A stretch of 63,315 nucleotides of DNA, counting the filler, from Pelomyxa schiedti (lineage: Eukaryota > Protista > Evosea): assembly GCA_020536535.1 (NCBI GenBank). It is 10 parts of 10 records of this genome, joined end to end, with 100 filler letters (N's around TTAATTAATTAA, not from the genome) between each part and the next. Parts side by side here need not be neighbours in the genome. Positions count along the whole stretch, not along the records: positions 28,185 to 47,460 come from JAHLWZ010000181.1; 9 more parts are not named here. One strand, 5' to 3'. The translations under genes and the position numbers were made by a program. This document shows, in pieces, positions 35,466 through 47,460 of this stretch. The notes under the pieces are model-generated. The model saw only the letters and a list, made by a program, of their open reading frames with translations. It did no database searches and had not been told where the DNA came from. Numbering within the stretch: the first letter of the stretch is position 1; every line of letters starts with the position of its first letter.

Positions 35466-38078
35466 TCAGGTACCCAGCACACTCAACAGAAAAGCGTCGT
35501 ATTCAGTGTAATTGTGGGTGACGGTGGTGGCTACCTCATATAAGTCCTTCAATGGGAAATTCAGTTTCCTGGAATCAAGACTGTTACCGGATATTGGTGA
35601 GGAGAAAGGGAGAATCAGCGTACATTCCCTGAAGTTTGTATGATACCCCCAGTGCTTGGAAGTACCTATACTTCAGGTCCGTAAACTCTTTTTGTACTAC
35701 TGCCTGGTCCCCTAACTAGAAGTACCTTAGGGTTTGGGCTTGAGAAGTTGTACATACAAGGTAGCTGACATAAAACTCCAGCTCTCTGTTCGTATTGGAT
35801 AAAATCTCACATTTTTGGATCCAATCCCCTGCGAGTTCTTCTCCCTGCATAGGATTAACAAGTGGAAGCGCGAGGCTTGATACCGTTCCGATCGGCCTGA
35901 GACCCCTTGCAGCCAGGTATTTGTGCACAAAGCAGTCCGCTTCGCTGTGCCTTCCTTCAATTTCCGCTGTGAACCTATCTGAAGTTTCGGCTTGGTTTAC
36001 TTCCGGTTGCAGGTCTGTTTCTCCCAGTAGTAACTTGTTCTCTTCCGGCTAAATTAAATTAGAGTTACTACGAAAATACCTTCGGGAAGGGCGTTACTTG
36101 ATTTACATCTTCATCCTTCTGTGTATTAGGATATGTTGCATCATTGAGCCACGCTTCCACACATTTTTCAATAGCTTCTTCCCACCCAAATGCACTATCA
36201 CCTTGAAGCCACTGCCGAAATCTCGCAATTTGGCTTCGCTGCGGAATACAAATTACTTCTCTCATGTATGTTTTTATAAAGTCTTCAATGGTGTGCTGAG
36301 ATAACCACTGCTGGTTGACCGACTCCCTTAGAACCTCGGAGTGCATCTTTGTCTCTTTTTCTCGTTCTTGGTTTTCGGATTCATTGTTGTGCATTACTAG
36401 TCTCTCTACTTCCAGTGAGAGGCACGTGTTCTCAGATTTACATTCATTAAGGAGGTTGTTTGTATTCTGTAATTGTGTCTGAAGCTCTTTAACTTGTAGT
36501 TGAAGGGAAGTAATAATATCTCTATCTACTCCCTATCGGCATTAGTCTCATGAAGAGGTTAAGTTTACACTTTACATCAAGAAGTAGCACTTTTGATCCG
36601 CCTACTGATGGTCGCATGTCTGTGCCTGTAGTTGTAGGTGTATGCTCTTTGATCAAGCAAACCGCGATATCTTCAACCGGCCCACCAAATCTTTTAAGCA
36701 ATTCACCTTGCAACCACTGTGCAAATCGATCTGCCCTACTGCCCTCAGGTAGGTCATTGAGCTCTTTTACTAAGCGGTCAAGGCTCGAGTGCGCATACTC
36801 AACTGGGCTCTGAGACTTGTCTGCTTCAAAGGCCCATATCAATTGGCGCCTTGCTTGGACGTATTGTGCTCGTTCACTGCGAGTCTCTTCCAATTCTTCA
36901 CGGACCTTCTTTAATTCTATTTTCAGAGAGGTATTTTGTGCAAGAATGGAAGTAGTCTCTTTGCAACGCTTTTCTAGGTCCTGGACACGGTTGTTGAGAG
37001 CCTCGTTTTCGGCTTCTAGTGCTGCTATACGAGATTCATCTTTGTGTGTGTATGAATTTGGTGTTGAAGCCTTTCCAACATATGTGGGTTCTAATGTGTT
37101 TTCTTCTTCTACTTCTTCATCCCAATTCGGCTCTTCGAGTACGCCACCCTTTGTCAGCAACCATGATAAAATGGCTTGTTCAATCTGAGGAACCCAAGCA
37201 CATACTGCCTTGGAATTGTCAAGTGCAGATGATCCTGATTGGTACCACTCCCTTAGCCTCGTCGCTCTAGAACGCTGTGGTAATCCATTGATGCTGTTCA
37301 TGTGAAGGGCAGCAAATTCCTCAATTGTCCTCTCCGCCAGCCATCTGGACTCGAATTCCCTCCTGAGCCAGAGTGCCCTTCTCTTTTCACGTTTTGCTAG
37401 TCTTAGCTGTTCCAGGTGCGCCAAAATTGTAAAAATCTCCGAGGTTCCCGCTGAATCCCACTCATCATCAACACTTTCATCCCAGCTACTTTCACCATCA
37501 GAAGAAAGAGTAGTGGTTTGCAAGTCTGAGTCCCGGAGGTGGGGCGGAAAGGAAGGGCTGCTCTCCCCCGATTTAAATCCGCTCCTAGTCGACGGGGATA
37601 ACCCCCCTGGGATAATGTTGAAGGTCCCGCTGGTGCGTAGATCGTCCCACCTTGGCTTGACTACCTCCTGAGTGCCATCCAATAAGAAAGAGGGCACCTC
37701 GGCACCCGATTCAATCCACTTGGAAACAGCTTCCTCAACCTCAGCGTAGTGTACTATCGCCTGTGCACTAGCTTCGGCAGCCAGCCAATCTCTCAAACGG
37801 GCGCTTCTAGAAGTGCTAGAGTTTAGGTCCTCAGTAACATTGTGCATGTGAAGGTCGGCAAAGCACTCACACGACAGTCCCCTGTCGATCCACAGCTCCT
37901 GAAAATCGTCACGCAGGCCCATTGAAGTATTCACGGGCGCTCGTTCGAAAATGGTCTCCAATGGGCCGCGCAAGCCTCGCCGCTGGTCTGAGCAACTTGG
38001 TGGTGTCACAAACTCCAGATCTACGGCGCATAACGGCACATTGAGGTGTTGGAAATCGACATGTGTTGTACGCTCCAT
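35466..38078 (-). CDS. Hypothetical coiled-coil protein with four copies of an unrecognised 65-aa W-rich repeat
   Basis: A 1.5-kb first exon is joined to ORF 36068-36394 by a 43-nt intron. The repeat units align by eye. The 3-prime end is approximate. Confidence 0.75.
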
Positions 38079-38570
38079 GGTAACCTCAGAAAGCAGAGTC
38101 GTAGCAATTACAAGATCTCCACTGCACAAACTGCCACCGACAAAAACGAAGGCGCCACCACTTGGTTGCTTGTTGCTTGTGTTAGTTTCTAAATTGTGTT
38201 AGCGGCGGGTGAAGATTATTGATTTTGAAATGATTTGATAGGGCGCACCTAGAAATACACGACATCTGCACCGGGAAGTGTTGTACAACACGGAAAAAAC
38301 ATCTCCGATCACCGAATCTTCAGCGAAAAGGACACAGAAGAGGGGCCGAAGAAGAGTTCATCAGGTGATGGGATCCAAGCTCCTCACACCGCGGGAGGGG
38401 GGCACGAATTCCTCCGCTCTCCCGAGTGCTCTCTGACACCGAATCTCTCCCAGACCGCCCGACCTTCGCTTAAACGAAAAACAAAAACGGGTGATGGGCA
38501 ACACTAGCGGCACCAGCGACGCCAGGGTAAGAGCGAAGTGCTTTGTGCCATTTGTCAAATTAACAAGTGC

Positions 38571-40411: not shown

Positions 40412-42580
40412 ATGTGGGGGCCACAACGAGAGTGGACGGGGAGCACTTCCGACGTGGAAAGTAGAAAGGGGTGCTGTGGACGATGGGCCAAGAAGGTCAT
40501 GGACTGGTGGATTCCCCCTGGGGTGCCTAGGTCGCCTTGTACCACGACTCCCTTACTCATACCTCTCTCTCTCCTTTTTTTTTTTTTTTCCCCTCTCTTT
40601 AGAGGTAGCTTTTTTGCTGTGATGTGGCTGGTCACGTGTGAGGGCTTTATGTGGAACTGCGTACTTGTTTACATTGGATTTTTGGTATTATTTATGCCCA
40701 TAATTTTTTTTTTCCTCATTGAGGCCGATATCAAGGTGGAGGATTATGTAACAAATGATCCTAACACAGTTGGCTTTTATACTGGATTCCCGTCCATGGT
40801 GTACCATGCTGGACAGGTTTTCACCTTACGCTTATTATGCATTCTACAGCACTGAACTGGCTGCCTTTAGTTGCTCAGTGTATTTGTTTCGGGGTATGCC
40901 TCTGATAAATGGGGCCGGAGAGTGGTTTTGCTGATTGGAGCTTGTGGAAGCTTTGTTACTGCTATTGTGATGTGCTTCACATGTAATTTCCTCTACGTGG
41001 TGATTTGCAGAGGGTTCAATGGTCTATTTTGCGCGTTTGTGTCCCCAACAAGATTTCTCGCCCAGTAACATTTTGTTAGACAAATAGGAGTGATAAAAGT
41101 ATGCACAAATTCAAGGAAACGTTTGTTGTTTTGGAAAATAAATTTTGATAGGCATACCTTTCTGATATAGCTGGGAAGGATAACCGAGTAATAGTATTCT
41201 CGAGGTTCAGTCTTCTGTCAGCATTTGGGGGCATTGCTGGCTCGCTGTTAGCTGGCTACACAGTAAGACCTGCTGTTTTGTAAGACATTACTCCTTTTCT
41301 GAAATTGATGTTCACTAAGGCAGGTACCCTAACATTGTAGGAAGTGATGCCTTTCTCGCTCGCTTTCCATACTTCATACCGAATTTTATCCAAACGCTAT
41401 CTTATTCTGGAGCCATACTAGCTTCACTGAAATGGCTGAAAGATGTCCCAAGGGCACCTCCAAAAATTGAACTGATGGCTCTCACCAAGGAGTCTGAAAC
41501 CTCAACCTCAGTTGAAATTTATGAACAGCAAATTGAGACAATTGCATCACTTGATACCCCAGTTGCTGTAACAGAGAAGATTGTGGCAACAATGTCTGAG
41601 GGTGATGAAACTTTAAGGAGTGAAAACCCCGAAGGCATTATTGTTAGCACCACACCTTCCAGTGAGGAGGAGAAAAACCCTGTAAAGAAAACTTGGACAC
41701 GGCGTGATTGGATCATACCCATTCTCTTGTGCATTGTTTATGGTGTTTCCGGATTAGCAGTGGCATTTCTGAAGAATATCATACCAGTAACCGATCGTGC
41801 TACTCTATCATTTTCTCATTTCTCGAATAGATTTGGGCAATGTCAGACATTGATAGTGGTGGCCTTGGATTCAACACCAAACAAGTTGGAATACTAAATA
41901 GTATCTTTGGAGGACTTGTGAGCTCTAAAATCTTTTCTATTCCTTGTATTAACATTGACACTAGACGATCGTGATACAACTTTTCTTCTATGACCCCGTT
42001 GTTAAAAAATTGCAGTATGTATCGTTCCTTGTGTGCATAAATTGACACTGTGCAGTCTACTTTGGACATTACGTATTGGTTGTATCCTGGCAGTTCCGGC
42101 ATTTCTAGCACAACCTACAATTAATCGACTTGCTGACATCAATATTGTGATGTGGGTTGTATTAATAGCTCTCTGTGCTGTACAGCAATACGCAGTTCAG
42201 CTGAATTTTACCCCTATATTTACACTCATTTCCAACAGTGTCGATGCAGGTAATTTTCAAAAGAAATGCCTCATAGTGAACTAACAAAACAAAATTTTCT
42301 AAAAGTAAGGTCCGGAAAAGTAAACGGGATTGGGCAGACAGTTGCATCCATTGGCCGCTGTGTGGGCCCTCTTTCTGCCACAGTCCTCTTTGGTGCATAA
42401 CTTCCCACAGATTCTACCTTCACTAACTGAATGTATTTGCCAGCATGGACCCTTGAGAACGGACTGGGATTTCCACTGGATTACCGGTTCTCGTTTATAG
42501 TCACTGCCTCGATCCCTCTGATTTCGCTCCTCCTCACAATCAGACTCCCAAAATCACTCAACTACCCATATCAAGGATGA
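40412..42580 (+). CDS. Major facilitator superfamily transporter, ZIFL/TCR-like (multi-exon)
   Basis: Motif A SGYASDKWGRRVVLL, ICRGFNGLF, AYLSDI, GKVNGIGQTVASIGRCVGP, and multiple TM exons. Confidence 0.88.
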
Positions 42581-42634
42581 AAGAATTTTCCTTCCTGTCA
42601 GTTTTTTCTTGTTGTCTCTGAGGGGTGGTGTTAT

Positions 42635-44220
42635 TTACAATTTGGAGTGGTGTCTATCATCCCAATACACTTTTGTGAACCCAGAGATCGTCGTCAGGAT
42701 TACAGGTGGAGTAAGACACTGTGGTCCACTTCTCTGGTTTTGGTGGAATAGGTCCAGCTACTACTTTGTTTTACCACAAGCCGGGCTACATGATCCAGGC
42801 TTCATGAAAATTAAAAAAAGGGCAGCTAGGCTCTACATCCTCGGGGGTTCCGATTGGATTGACAAGCGTATGCTTACGGGAAGAGACTCTTCGAAGCTTA
42901 ACGACAGATCCTGAGGTGTTTTGACAAGCCGCCCCGAAATTCAAAGGAAAGTCGAATCCCTCATACGTAACTATGGGTTGATTCGCTGTAGAATTCAAAA
43001 AATAAAATGCTCCTGCTGTGTAGTTGTTGCGGTTGCGGTTGCTGTGGCGGTTGTGTCTGAGGCTTCTGCGGCAGAGGCGGAGACGGCGTTGGCGCTTGTG
43101 GTGGCGGTTGCACTTTGATTTCGTACCGTGAGTTGCTTGAAACCCAGCATGTTGTTTGTCAGCATAGCGGCTAAAAAGATGTGGTCATTGTCGGGTGAAC
43201 GAGCAACACCAATCCCAATGCACTCAGAGTTGGGTATGTCAATCACTGTGTTGGGGGTGGTGGATTTGCATGTGTGAACTTGTGAGTCAGCCCCAACCCA
43301 GAACACAAGGCGGTGTCATATAGGTCACACGTAGAAAACGATGCGCTGGGCGTTCTACTCCAATAAGTACTGCTTTTTTCCAATAAGTCCACTTGAAAGT
43401 TGACAGATCCATCTGTGCCCAGTATAGAGCGTTATTTTCACATGTGATGAAAACACAAATAGAATCGAAAGAGGGTAGCAAAGCCACTGCTGGATCGCAG
43501 TTTGGGCAGATAGTTTGCAACACCCAATTGGTGATAGTCACAAACTTCTGCCAATCAACCTCATAGTAGCTCCATTGCAGTCTATGGGTTTTTGTGTGTA
43601 CAATGAAACACTTGACCACGCCGTTGACAAACAGCTACTCGACCAATGACCTCGGGGGACCCTGTAACTTCCTTCCACTCATCCCATTCCTGGGTTTCTG
43701 TGTTGTATATTCGGTAACTGACACGGTTTGACATGTTAGTGGTGAACACCCATATCGTATCACTGACCCACACAACAGAGGGAATAGAATTTATGGTATC
43801 TCCTGATGCTAGAGACCACTGATTGTAATGCTTGAGCAGATAATCGCATTGCTGGCGAAGGGGTCAGTTAGTAAATGGTGAATTGGAACGGGGGCTCCAT
43901 ATTCTATGACAACCCAGAGGTTTGAGTGATGCAGACCACACTGCTGAATCAAGAGCATCTGTATTGCATCCCCCCCTCACATTTAAGGCAATTACCTCCG
44001 TCACCTCTTTGGAAGTATAACCGGTGTTATGGAAGTTGTGGCCCAGCTTGATGGTCAATTAGTTTTCGCGCCTGTTGCAGAGTTGCTGCTCGTTCAATCA
44101 TCCCCTTTTCATCATCACCTTTTCGATTTAAACATGGTACGAGAACCCCCCCCAAAAAAATTCACACAAACAGTGAGGAGTTTCTTGCTCTCCGCGCATA
44201 TGATGTTCAGCTTCAATTCC
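42635..44220 (-). pseudogene. Decayed MACPF C-terminal half plus lectin-like (PLL/AAL-type) beta-propeller
   Basis: TPHCLCEFFWGG, then GG-x10-W-xx-SLKP-(frameshift)-WVVIEYGAPVPIHHLL. Blades such as PSVVWVSDTIWVFTTNMSNRVSYRIYNTETQEWDEW and PAVALLPSFDSICVFITCENNALYW...KWTYW. At least three frameshifts and several in-frame stops. Confidence 0.65.
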
Positions 44221-44381
44221 ACCTGGGCATTCATAGTTGATCCGCCAGCAGAGATGCACCTGTTATTTCGAGTAAGTACTAGCTCTTTCTTTTCGTTCGC
44301 GTGGTTGCTGTGATTTAGCTTAAATCACATCTTTTTGCGACGTTGAACTACTTGTGTTTGTGCATTTTCTTGGGGCAGAAA

Positions 44382-46900
44382 ATGAGCGACACTGCGTGCT
44401 TGGGGACAACAAAACGAAAATACACTGTTGTTGAGCTTGAAGGTAAAAAGTATGGTGTCAAGCTGGCAGAAACATCGAACCTGGCCACTGCGAGGAAGGT
44501 AATACGCACCGAACTTGAGGTTGAACTGACCGGTCGCACTTGGTTGTTTGCGGATCCGAATGACTCCATGAGAAAGCTCTGGGAAGTTCGTATCTTCCTT
44601 TCCAATTTTGCCATTACAATGCTCATTCGAATATCAAAGGGAATGGAGGCTGTAGTCACTCTTGAGAAGGCACTCTCTTGTGCCACTGCATCTCTGAGAC
44701 TGATAGTTTCCACCTCGCGTGCGTCAGCACCTCCCATTCTATTTGCAAAGGGTTCTGAGAAATCAGCTGCAAAGACCGAGATTGACCAAGTCACAATACC
44801 AAAGTTGATCTCTCAAGAAGAGTTTCATCTTCTTAGAGCAGCGCTCTGGAAGCGGAAGCATATTACTAAAGTGGGAAGACAAACGAATCACTTATGGAGT
44901 TGTTGCTACTTCCAGACGGTGACCATAGCCTAAAAGAGGTGATAACTGGGATTGGATTGCCACAAGCACTATGTCCAAATGGCACTGCGCCTCTGGGAAC
45001 GGCCAAACTCACATTCGATGACGATGCCAGCATGCTGAAACTCGTGCACGAGAACATCTGGGCTGTAAATGAGATCTCGACCTACACCCACGCCTACACG
45101 TCTCTGGGTGAAAGGAATGGATTTCATCTTTACGGAGTTGCTCCACACACTGTACAACTGTAAACTGGGGTGCGGGGTTTGACTCTTCCTTTGCACTTGA
45201 ATGTACAAATCAAGGTGAAGCTGTTACTGCAAAGCATTTGGAGCTTTGTACTGGGTGGCACGTGGTGAAAAAAGTTGAGATTCATATCCCAAAGAAGTTC
45301 ATTCAACTTAGCAGTGATGTAAATCCTGACTTTGATCAAGCTGCCAAGAACAATGCAAGATGCGATCAAGAAACATGGCGTATTCATTTTCAGCGACTAC
45401 GTCATTGGCGGTGTGCTGTATTATACACATAACCTGGGTCAAACCAATAGTTTCGAAGCATCAAAGAAAGAGTTTTCTATGGCATTTGCCCTGGCAATTA
45501 CTGGGAAAAAGGCATTTACAGGTTCTGGTGCTATAGCTGCCAAAGGGGAGAAAGCAGGACGGGGGCTTGATGTATCAAAAATATCCTATGAACACATCCA
45601 CCTCTTTGAGGGGGTACTAAAGGGACTAATGACAGTACAACACACTGGGCAGAATCTCTGAAGCCAAGTAATTGGCAGGTAGTTGCGTACAGCAACCCTG
45701 TTCATTCATCTCATCTCATCTTCATCACCCCTGGGGTATCACTGACTGGCTGCCATGAAACATAAAAACAAACCACCAAATAGAGGAAGTGATTGGGAGA
45801 CTGGGGCAGCCACGATTGTGCCAATCAACAAGGTCCCTCATTCTCCTCCAACCAACAAAGGCAGGCATCCTGACAGGATACACTGTTTTTGTGTCCAGGA
45901 AAGGTGTTTGTCTACCATGTGGACCTTTGTGCTTGTTGTTTGGAAGAGGTTGGTTACCCCTAAAACCTTCACCCCTGGGTGAAGGTTTTGAGAGGAAAAA
46001 AAGCTTCGCCCCATGGGTGAAGAAAAAAGGGTGAAGGTGTCAGTGTTTTCTGCTCTCAAGCTTCACCCCAAAACCTCCGCCCCATGATCCAGTTATGCAC
46101 CCCTAAGTTATAGAAAGTACAACATGTAGCTGCACAGGCATGTGTCCTGGTTCTTGGTTCAGCCCACACAAACGGCAGNNNNNNNNNNNNNNNNNNNNNN
46201 NNNNNNNNNNNNNNNNNNNNNNNNNNNNNNNNNNNNNNNNNNNNNNNNNNNNNNNNNNNNNNNNNNNNNNNNNNNNNNCAAGGTCCCTCATTCTCCTCCA
46301 ACCAACAAAGGCAGGCATCCTGACAGGATACACTGTTTTTGTGTCCAGGAAACAACAACAAATATCAGTGAGATACTGGATCTCAACAAGAAAAACTGGG
46401 GTGTCTTGCTGTCCAACATGTACTTTCCTTTGAAAACATGTGGCAGTCCAGAAGTACTTCCCATCAACTTCAGTCATTCCACCCTTGGTACAACCTTTTT
46501 CATTTAAGGCTTGAAAAGCTTGCCTTTTCTTGATCTCTGCTTGTCTCTACTGGCTTGCACTGTGGACAACTCTTGAATGAAATTTGCTTTGCCCTCAAAC
46601 TCATGGTTAGCAGCCAGATCCAACACTTCCTTCAGAACTGGATTCAGCCCAGCGCTTCACAAGACCTGCATCTGGAGTTGTCAAGAACAATGCTATCTCT
46701 GATAGAATGGGCATCACCTTGTGAAGATGTTATGCTTGAGAGTTTATTTATCACTGTACCACTTCCCTTTAAAGGATCCTTGACAGAAGACTGAGTACGG
46801 TTGCCAGTGCCATCAGAGGGCCTAGGTGTGCTCACATTTACCCCTTTGGTGTGCTTTGTTGTGGAGTCTGATTGTATTTAAAGGTCAAAATGTAAAAATT
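44382..46900 (+). pseudogene. MACPF (perforin-like) gene with propeller-like C-terminus, disrupted by frameshifts and an insertion
   Basis: Signature-like KKHGVFIFSDYVIGG. C-terminal GGTKGTNDSTTHWAESLKPSNWQVVAYSNPV. Frameshifts near 45155, 45350 and 45610. Downstream DRIHCF...DLNKKNW and AQRFTR match the paralogue's DSICVF...DLSTFKW and AHRFLR. End approximate. Confidence 0.75.
45903..46178 (+). mobile_element. Palindrome-rich non-coding insertion (MITE/foldback-like), copy 1, truncated at a gap
   Basis: Interrupts the coding sequence after GTCCAGGAAA. The uninterrupted site appears at 46279-46360. Near-identical to 47179-47460. Confidence 0.7.
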
Positions 46901-47178
46901 GTTGCTTTTTCAAGCAAGGCTCAGTAGAGGTGCAAAAAGATGAGATGATTATAATGTCATTGTCTGGGTTGTGGTTGACACTGCTGGTTGTGTTGCCACT
47001 TCAGTCATCTCCAATGATTCATTTGACTCACACTGAGATGTTTGGGACTGTTGCTGATGCCTTTTTGGCTTGTTTGAGGAAGGGATATTTGTTTTTTTCA
47101 AGGAAATCAGACCATCAAAACTTTTCCCTCAGTGAAACCTTCACCCCACCAGGGTGTTCACTTTGGCTCACTCAGTAA

Positions 47179-47460
47179 GGTGTTTGTCTACCATGTGGAC
47201 CTTTGTGCTTGTTGTTTGGAAGAGGTTGGTTACCCCTAAAACCTTCACCCCTGGGTGAAGGTTTTGAGAGGAAAAAAAGCAAAACCTTCACCCCATGGGT
47301 GAAGAAAAAAGGGTGAAGGTGTCAGTGTTTTCTGCTATAAAGCTTCACCCCAAAACCTCCGCCCCATGATCCAGTTATGCACCCCTAAGTTATAGAAAGT
47401 ACAACATGTAGCTGCACAGGCATGTGTCCTGGTTCTTGGTTCAGCCCACACAAACGGCAG
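47179..47460 (+). mobile_element. Palindrome-rich non-coding insertion, copy 2, truncated at contig end
   Basis: Same start (GGTGTTTGTCTACC) and same truncation point (CACAAACGGCAG) as copy 1. Confidence 0.7.

Follow-up and report, generated by a model that had tools for sequence, protein, structure and literature searches.

Divergent, frame-disrupted loci in the Pelomyxa schiedti genome, with propeller-like blades on one strand and a transcribed block resembling perforin on the other

Two divergent loci and their support in reads

The window analysed here (63,315 nucleotides, filler included) contains two divergently oriented loci, both from contig JAHLWZ010000181.1 of the single-cell MDA genome of Pelomyxa schiedti. 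The plus-strand locus (Pelo_2198, protein KAH3765947.1) is annotated with a CDS of seven exons at 44382-46721. The minus-strand locus is annotated at 42995-44234 as a hypothetical protein of 237 amino acids without a Pfam hit, and its ORF relics extend beyond this model (42789-44324). The neighbouring genes (RSN1, RCC1 and MFS) gave normal Pfam matches, and an Rfam search of the contig piece found no RNA family. The organism is an anaerobic amoeba and a phagotrophic protist, as assumed in an earlier note on this DNA.

The reading frames of both loci are disrupted. Over 42300-45938, Logan contigs of two DNA runs (X1 and X2) matched the assembly with 0 differences and 0 gaps, so that the breaks described in the earlier note as signs of decay were left unrepaired. 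The assembly and these DNA runs probably share one sample, so that the runs amount to a re-assembly rather than independent material. RNA contigs from runs X3 and X4 showed 0 differences over 44397-46098, and the frame changes of the plus locus were reproduced in contigs of all four runs. The disruptions are real in the DNA and are not spliced away, with the exception of 46442-46670, where run X1 contigs are longer than the assembly by five short insertions (29 nt altogether) and reading frames are unreliable. Programmed frameshifting of the Euplotes type was rejected, for the frame changes differ in direction and have no motif in common. Stops are absent from all the ORF pieces of about 100 codons, which is somewhat unexpected in old pseudogenes.

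The P. schiedti genome paper reports 7.4 introns per gene, 98% of them GT-AG. With this density and with confirmed introns of about 50 nt, several of the frame changes could be introns.

Propeller-like blades of the minus-strand locus

At least five beta-propeller-like blades of about 45 residues each lie on the minus strand at 43118-43788, spread over three frames. They comprise blade 1 (43660-43788), blade 2 (43509-43659), which has a frame change within 43584-43640, blade 3 (43359-43508), blade 4 (43238-43358), in which 43316-43357 holds three in-frame stops together with a shift, and blade 5 (43118-43237). Alignment of six units gave the consensus xP..V...PD.I.VF.....T........L....W..W. 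The alignment of blade 1 with blade 3 scored 48 against a null of 24.3±4.5 (p<=0.001), so the repeated blade pattern noticed earlier is real. Downstream, a hexanucleotide microsatellite (GTTGCG, 4.7 copies, 43026-43053) lies inside an Ala/Thr-rich tail. No RNA contig covered 42646-44202.

The breaks fall within conserved units: at 43917 in a block shared with the plus locus (see below), at 43584-43640 in blade 2, and, as stops, at 43316-43357. These places leave no room for an intron, and splicing there would remove a conserved strand. The minus locus is likely to be the decayed relic of a propeller gene.

The kind of propeller was examined with several methods. In a language-model (ESM) comparison, the nearest clusters were propellers of the PLL-like and fungal fucose-lectin types, which had 166-173 features in common with the query (0.93). 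In Pfam, PF26607, PF03984 and PF07938 gave no match to the propeller pieces at E<=10, and Kelch_6 appeared below threshold (E=0.1). A PDB search returned a weak single-blade match to the YVTN propeller 1L0Q (E=0.06). The AF2 model of the propeller piece had a mean pLDDT of 46 and contained one four-stranded blade, for which pLDDT was 54-76. Foldseek with this model returned nothing at E<=0.001; at E of about 1, which is not significant, it listed blades of PLL2, PHL, kelch and DDB1 proteins. The single modelled blade superposes on blades of Photorhabdus PLL2 (6RFZ) and PHL (5MXE) with 22-27% identity. Like these lectins and the families named above, the minus locus has tandem blades of about 45 residues ending in W-x2-W; unlike them, its blades lie in three reading frames and escape Pfam. 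The repeated blades and the ESM neighbours support the lectin-like propeller proposed in the earlier note, and suggest that it probably belonged to the PLL or fucose-lectin type.

Transcription and structure of the plus-strand locus

RNA contigs of runs X3 and X4 define a transcribed span at 44276-46098 on the plus strand. A single intron was seen spliced in it, at 44590-44639 (50 nt, GT..AG). The annotation places the donor of this first intron 4 nt upstream, giving an in-frame intron of 54 nt; the observed splice breaks the frame, with a stop 7 codons past the junction. The contigs were collinear with the genome over 44640-45560 and 45613-46098, leaving annotated introns 2-4 unspliced and running inside intron 5 as well. 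The longest open frame in the spliced RNA has 112 codons. RNA depth was low (2-11), and the handful of fragments seen could be unspliced precursors.

A 148-residue antisense ORF (44348-44794) was considered as the N-terminus of the minus gene and rejected, with intron orientation, annotation and codon score favouring the plus strand. Its Pfam matches were sub-threshold noise only.

Farther along the transcript, a stretch reading H-G-V-F-I-x6-GG (45374-45412) is followed by 50 residues rich in Ala, Gly, Lys and Ser. A further element, here called the C-block, reads GG-x10-W-x2-SLKPSN-WQVVAYSNPVHSSHLI (45610-45726). Its frame differs from that of the piece upstream, the change falling in a G run at about 45610-45614. 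Its end, 'HSSHLIFI', is encoded by a microsatellite of five TCATC units (45701-45726).

Beyond the C-block, a blade-like ORF is interrupted after its first 25 codons by a dispersed repeat element (45903-46178; second copy at 47177-47460, the contig end). Read depth rises 2-10 fold at the repeat, and the RNA contig of 45613-46098 runs collinearly into it. An assembly gap follows (46179-46278), across which the sequence is not continuous. Its right flank (46279-46352) repeats 45829-45902 with 100% identity, and this 74-nt duplicate with the unique sequence after it (46279-46504, plus strand) yields one blade-like ORF, R-H-P-D-R-I-H-C-F ... N-W ... G-S-P-E-V. According to the genome paper, P_RNA_scaffolder was used for the assembly. 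With a dispersed repeat on its left and a duplicate on its right, the gap is therefore an RNA-based scaffold join, and no frame can be read across it.

These data bear on the possibility that both loci are functional orphan genes that evolve fast and contain many short introns, with the RNA contigs representing unspliced precursors. The intron density of the genome would allow this, and Augustus/EVM could connect the pieces of either locus through GT..AG introns. RNA contigs show transcription of the plus locus and splicing of its first intron, and codon usage of the ORF pieces is like that of neighbouring exons and positive in the used frames, a signal too weak to discriminate. A GT..AG interval of 38 nt (45572-45609) would bring the plus C-block in frame, and it falls exactly within the only stretch without listed RNA contigs. 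However, the contigs of two runs pass unspliced through annotated introns 2, 3 and 4, and the single observed splice uses the frame-breaking donor. The two confirmed introns are 50-51 nt long, whereas the annotated introns of Pelo_2198 measure 54, 68, 107, 40, 777 and 157 nt. In the minus locus, the breaks lie inside blades and the shared block, where splicing would cost a conserved strand. The annotated proteins have neither a Pfam match nor a relative, and the model of the plus protein shows no fold (AF2, mean pLDDT 30). We regard functional genes at these loci as unlikely. Pelo_2198 and the neighbouring minus model are probably not real proteins.

The shared block, its resemblance to perforin, and the origin of the loci

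The C-block recurs on the minus strand at 43977-43869. There GG-x10-W-x2-SLKP (43977-43918) is followed by an extra base (43917) and, in the next frame, by WVVIEYGAPVPIHHLL (43916-43869). A single base separates the two halves, which leaves no place for an intron, and contigs of runs X1 and X2 are identical to the assembly here. The same strings with the same spacing are thus present on both strands, as the earlier note had observed. When the plus C-block was aligned to the minus DNA with frameshifts allowed, the score was 45 against 32.1±4.1 for shuffled sequence, and 12 of 1000 shuffles reached it. The plus blade-like unit resembles minus blade 5 (p=0.009). Piece by piece, the best Smith-Waterman score between the two loci was 41, which is not significant against a null maximum of 41.8±3.5. 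Of the proposed homologous inverted pair, only the C-block stands out, in the frameshift-aware alignment; the loci show no significant similarity piece by piece. Likewise, a propeller in both copies holds for the minus locus with its five or more blades; the plus locus has a single blade-like unit, interrupted by the repeat element and the gap. The common block suggests an old partial inverted duplication.

Relatives were sought widely. An exhaustive phmmer search with a 97-residue core piece against 1.84 billion representative proteins returned only its own annotated protein and one repeat protein. We dismissed the latter as a chance match: the matches sit in a unit that it repeats, and Pfam gives it dispersed hits to families without relation to one another. 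Word searches with two pieces and the annotated protein found the query alone, two metagenome scans found no paralogue or orthologue, tblastn against plasmids was blank, and the ESM Atlas gave no usable match to two plus pieces. The phmmer, word and metagenome searches therefore yielded no functional parent or orthologue, no recognisable MACPF relative, nor any member of the expanded family with birth-and-death turnover that had been envisaged.

The lack of relatives or a domain match would also fit a plus locus that is a non-coding or repeat-associated transcript, with its ORFs and motif arising by chance and coding ancestry confined to the minus locus. Piecewise similarity at the null level, long ORFs on both strands at 44348-44933, a motif containing a microsatellite and a transcript entering a repeat are all consistent with this explanation. 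Against it, the transcribed strand carries a row of five pieces without stops, each of about 100 codons, where base composition leads us to estimate about 2 such ORFs per 5 kb in all six frames. The frames used score positively for codon usage, and two elements, the shared block and a blade-like unit, have similar counterparts in the minus locus. We judge a non-coding origin very unlikely.

The shared block is also the main link to MACPF proteins. When mouse perforin residues 281-329 (from the PDB) were compared with all six frames of the 19-kb piece, the best match was the plus C-block (score 47), with W, SL, PSN, V, YS, P, H and L in common. This perforin block is a conserved part of the Pfam MACPF domain (profile positions 156-197). 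In perforin-1 (PDB 3NSJ / 7PAG; PF01823) and in Pelomyxa alike, a block of 35-40 residues after a GG pair reads W-x2-SL-(K)-PSN-..-V-.-YS-.-P-.-H-..-L (mouse perforin 295-329), and another GG is located some 70 residues before the block (68 in the plus locus, 75 in perforin). In the plus locus, this upstream GG has x6 and a G before it and an amphipathic stretch of small residues after it, at the place expected for TMH2. The minus copy has an equal block with equal spacing and continues into the propeller. These features favour the reading of the earlier note, in which MACPF pore-formers fused to a lectin propeller were duplicated in inverted orientation and both are now pseudogenes.

Several results weigh against that reading. 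Of 3000 shuffles, 93 attained the perforin score (p about 0.03 over the piece). On the minus DNA the perforin match was not significant, and part of the plus C-block is the TCATC microsatellite. PF01823 matched neither the 18 ORF pieces taken singly nor the annotated protein at E<=1 or E<=10, although positive controls worked, with perforin blocks of 49 and 57 residues matching at 2.8e-7 and 2.9e-17. Other Pfam matches of these queries were sub-threshold noise only. PDB sequence searches with Pelomyxa pieces, block profiles and the annotated protein returned no perforin or other MACPF protein, and a profile combining perforin and Pelomyxa blocks recruited no other MACPF from the PDB. The residues of the MACPF signature, (Y/W)-G-(T/S)-H-(F/Y)-x6-G-G, are absent from both loci. 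The plus stretch H-G-V-F-I-x6-GG keeps the glycines alone, and the minus copy has just F-F-G-G-G at a run of eight G. On the plus piece, the perforin signature block scored 21 and ranked 154 of 910. The interval from GG to W is 10 residues in Pelomyxa and 21 in perforin, and the rest of the domain cannot be recognised. Upstream of the shared block, the minus copy leaves space for only about 110 residues, so that a whole MACPF domain, with its N-terminal 250-300 residues, cannot fit. No obvious signal peptide was seen by eye at either annotated start, and the AF2 models were uninformative. MACPF membership is thus unsupported, and both the fused pore-former ancestry and the assignment to a MACPF toxin family, which is unproven, appear doubtful on the sequence comparisons available.

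A comparable architecture exists in animals. Apple-snail perivitellin-2 (PV2) consists of a MACPF chain and a tachylectin-like propeller chain; it is a two-chain protein with recognisable domains. PV2 resembles the earlier proposal in that a propeller lectin aims a pore-forming module. It differs in that the MACPF part is unproven in Pelomyxa and the genes are broken.

The explanation we prefer, to which we give about an even chance, is that both divergent loci are decayed, lineage-restricted gene relics, the minus one of a multi-blade propeller and the plus one still transcribed, with a shared block that is perforin-like while MACPF membership is undemonstrated. Under this explanation, both loci would once have coded for protein. 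A multi-blade propeller gene on the minus strand would have become split over three frames, acquired in-frame stops and fallen silent. Pelo_2198 has kept its transcription and the splicing of its first intron, and its 3′ part enters the dispersed repeat and the scaffold join. The block common to both is similar to the end of the MACPF domain of perforin. The sequence, its breaks, the transcription and the repeated blades are observed directly; a former coding function, the type of lectin and the duplication are deduced from them. Automatic annotation would then have threaded both loci into hypothetical proteins by means of invented introns. Such relics resemble transcribed unitary pseudogenes in that a unique locus has frame breaks and stops, some transcription and splicing persist, and the searches gave no intact paralogue; they differ in having no known functional orthologue that proves a former function.

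The main lesson is one of caution. In a single-cell draft genome rich in introns, it is easy to read too much into frame changes and short motifs, and broken loci can be masked by introns that automatic annotation invents. The pore-formers of Archamoebae known to us are the saposin-like amoebapores. It is quite unlikely, though conceivable, that Pelomyxa, and perhaps Archamoebae generally, once had a perforin-like pore-former fused to a PLL-type propeller, which was partly duplicated in inverted orientation and of which both copies are being lost in a symbiont-packed anaerobe. If true, this would give the first sign of a MACPF-lectin weapon in the Archamoebae. Confirmation through an intact orthologue would add a glycan-aimed pore-former to this group and document its loss.

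The shared block and the MACPF question

The studied piece, JAHLWZ010000181.1 (19,276 bases; Pelomyxa schiedti assembly GCA_020536535.1), carries a minus locus (ORF relics at 42789-44324 (-)) and a plus locus, Pelo_2198 (CDS 44382-46721 (+)). An earlier note took these for a head-to-head pair of decayed MACPF and lectin-propeller genes, and the strings it quoted were found on both strands. Both strands encode GG-x10-W-x2-SLKP, then W.VV.Y..PV...HL. The plus block (45610-45726) lies in a single reading frame, and its end is encoded by a TCATC x5 microsatellite; in the minus block (43869-43977), one extra base at 43917 parts the two halves. Compared piece by piece, the two loci were no more similar than shuffled controls, and no similarity was found at the nucleotide level. 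The only comparison that stood out was the plus block aligned, with frameshifts allowed, to the minus DNA (45 versus 32.1±4.1; 12 of 1000 shuffles equal).

Long homopolymer runs are slippage-prone. In the minus relic they fall exactly on the "GG" motifs (44146-44160, T7 then G8, and 43969-43975, G7, both (-)), and a G5 run lies at the plus-locus frame change near 45610.

No ORF piece, nor the annotated protein, matched the Pfam MACPF profile PF01823. As a positive control, two mouse perforin blocks, taken from PDB output and searched alone, matched it, one at 2.8e-7 over profile positions 156-197 and the other at 2.9e-17 over positions 49-104, so the profile covers, and is sensitive to, the regions at issue. 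For the perforin C-block, the top match in six frames of the piece was the plus C-block, equalled in 93 of 3000 shuffles; on the minus DNA it fell at the correct place without significance. The plus "signature" piece reads H-G-V-F-I-x6-GG, and the perforin signature block ranked 154th on the plus piece. Upstream of the shared block, the minus copy offers space for no more than about 110 residues. A combined perforin and Pelomyxa block profile recruited no further MACPF from the PDB. Exhaustive phmmer of the 97-residue core piece, which did return the annotated product of the locus itself, word searches and metagenome scans found no relative. Taking into account that the candidate was picked from a very large scan for such resemblances, we regard MACPF ancestry of the loci as unlikely. 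A MACPF toxin family was not demonstrated, and its proposed expansion found no support.

Propeller-like repeats

The minus strand encodes at least five units of about 45 residues (43660-43788, 43509-43659, 43359-43508, 43238-43358 and 43118-43237, blades 1 to 5) with the consensus P..V...PD.I.VF...T...L....W..W. Blade 1 scored 48 against blade 3, versus 24.3±4.5 (p<=0.001). By language-model features, the clusters closest to a 115-residue minus piece were PLL-like (PF26607, DUF346) and fungal fucose-lectin (proximity 0.93; 166-173 features in common). Kelch_6 (E 0.1), YVTN propeller (E 0.06) and Foldseek of a single blade against PLL2 and PHL (22-27% identity, E about 1) gave weak but mutually consistent hints. 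The AF2 model had a pLDDT of 46 overall, with one four-stranded blade at 54-76. The minus locus is likely a beta-propeller relic, and its assignment to the PLL or fucose-lectin type is tentative. Of the propeller claimed for both loci, the repeated blades of the minus locus remain; the plus locus has one blade-like unit only (p=0.009 against minus blade 5, in three comparisons), cut by a dispersed repeat and the scaffold join.

Frame breaks and transcription

The genome was sequenced from MDA-amplified DNA of single cells with Illumina and Nanopore reads and assembled by SPAdes in single-cell mode; scaffolds were joined by RNA read pairs (P_RNA_scaffolder), genes were modelled with Augustus, PASA and EVM, and introns number 7.4 per gene, 98% of them GT-AG (PMC8887013). 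Frame changes are therefore to be expected in genuine genes, and the main rival explanation is that the loci are functional, intron-rich orphan genes. A canonical 38-nt GT..AG interval (45572-45609) would restore the frame of the plus C-block; it falls in the sole plus-locus stretch without listed RNA contigs. Three minus-strand disruptions are not introns, because they lie inside conserved units: the single base at 43917 interrupts the shared block, the frame changes within 43584-43640 of blade 2, and blade 4 has three stops plus a shift at 43316-43357.

The frame breaks withstood the read check: Logan contigs of two DNA runs, probably derived from the same sample as the assembly, span 42300-45938 with 0 differences and leave them unrepaired. 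They keep both confirmed introns and are thus genomic. RNA contigs from two single-cell runs covered the plus locus (44276-46098) at low depth and left 42646-44202 uncovered, which favours transcription over DNA carry-over. The sole spliced plus-locus intron seen was 44590-44639 (50 nt, GT..AG); the remaining contigs were collinear with the genome across or within annotated introns 2-5. The annotation takes an in-frame donor 4 nt upstream (44586; 54-nt intron). The RNA contig takes the frame-breaking donor 44590, with a stop 7 codons past the junction, and no ORF in the observed RNA is longer than 112 codons.

The neighbouring genes (RSN1, RCC1 and MFS) appear normal. A spliced RNA contig confirmed an intron (42392-42442, 51 nt, GT..AG) in the MFS transporter gene upstream, a 536-aa model annotated at 40412-42580. 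An antisense ORF of 148 codons (44348-44794 (-)), opposite the first two exons of Pelo_2198, had no Pfam match and probably results from the plus strand's coding-like composition. An uninterrupted 535-codon ORF (36522-38129 (-)), by eye seemingly rich in acidic, coiled-coil-like sequence, lies within an annotated 794-aa gene without a Pfam match, one more family-less protein on this contig.

The gap, the dispersed repeat and the nature of the loci

Given the RNA-pair scaffolding, the run of 100 Ns marks an RNA-based join, and no sequence is readable across it. Its left flank is the dispersed repeat (45903-46178), with a second copy at the contig end (47177-47460); read-contig depth jumps 2-10 fold over it. 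On the right, 46279-46352 duplicates without mismatch the 74 nt directly before the repeat (45829-45902), so the assembly graph branches after 45902, into the repeat or into 46353 onward. One RNA contig is collinear over 45613-46098, passing the junction; the expressed plus copy therefore includes the repeat. The repeat, of at least 280 nt, holds a 28-nt palindrome (AAAACCTTCACCCCTGGGTGAAGGTTTT) and recurring GGGTGAAGG motifs. Contig depth marks it as high-copy; it is expressed and terminates both the left sub-contig and the entire contig. At 46442-46670, contigs of one DNA run carry five short insertions (29 nt in total) and only two substitutions relative to the assembly, so reading frames there are untrustworthy. 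This suggests an uncorrected long-read patch of the hybrid assembly; a close paralogue may account for it instead.

The observation in the earlier note was thus confirmed in part, and of its interpretation the propeller and the decay are supported, the MACPF toxin family not. The annotated 379- and 237-residue proteins are probably artefacts of an ORF forced through breaks. Most likely, these would be two lineage-restricted, divergently oriented loci: a decayed, silent propeller gene on the minus strand, and a transcribed plus locus with a broken frame and a 3′ part interrupted by the dispersed repeat, their single short common block perhaps stemming from an old partial inverted duplication.
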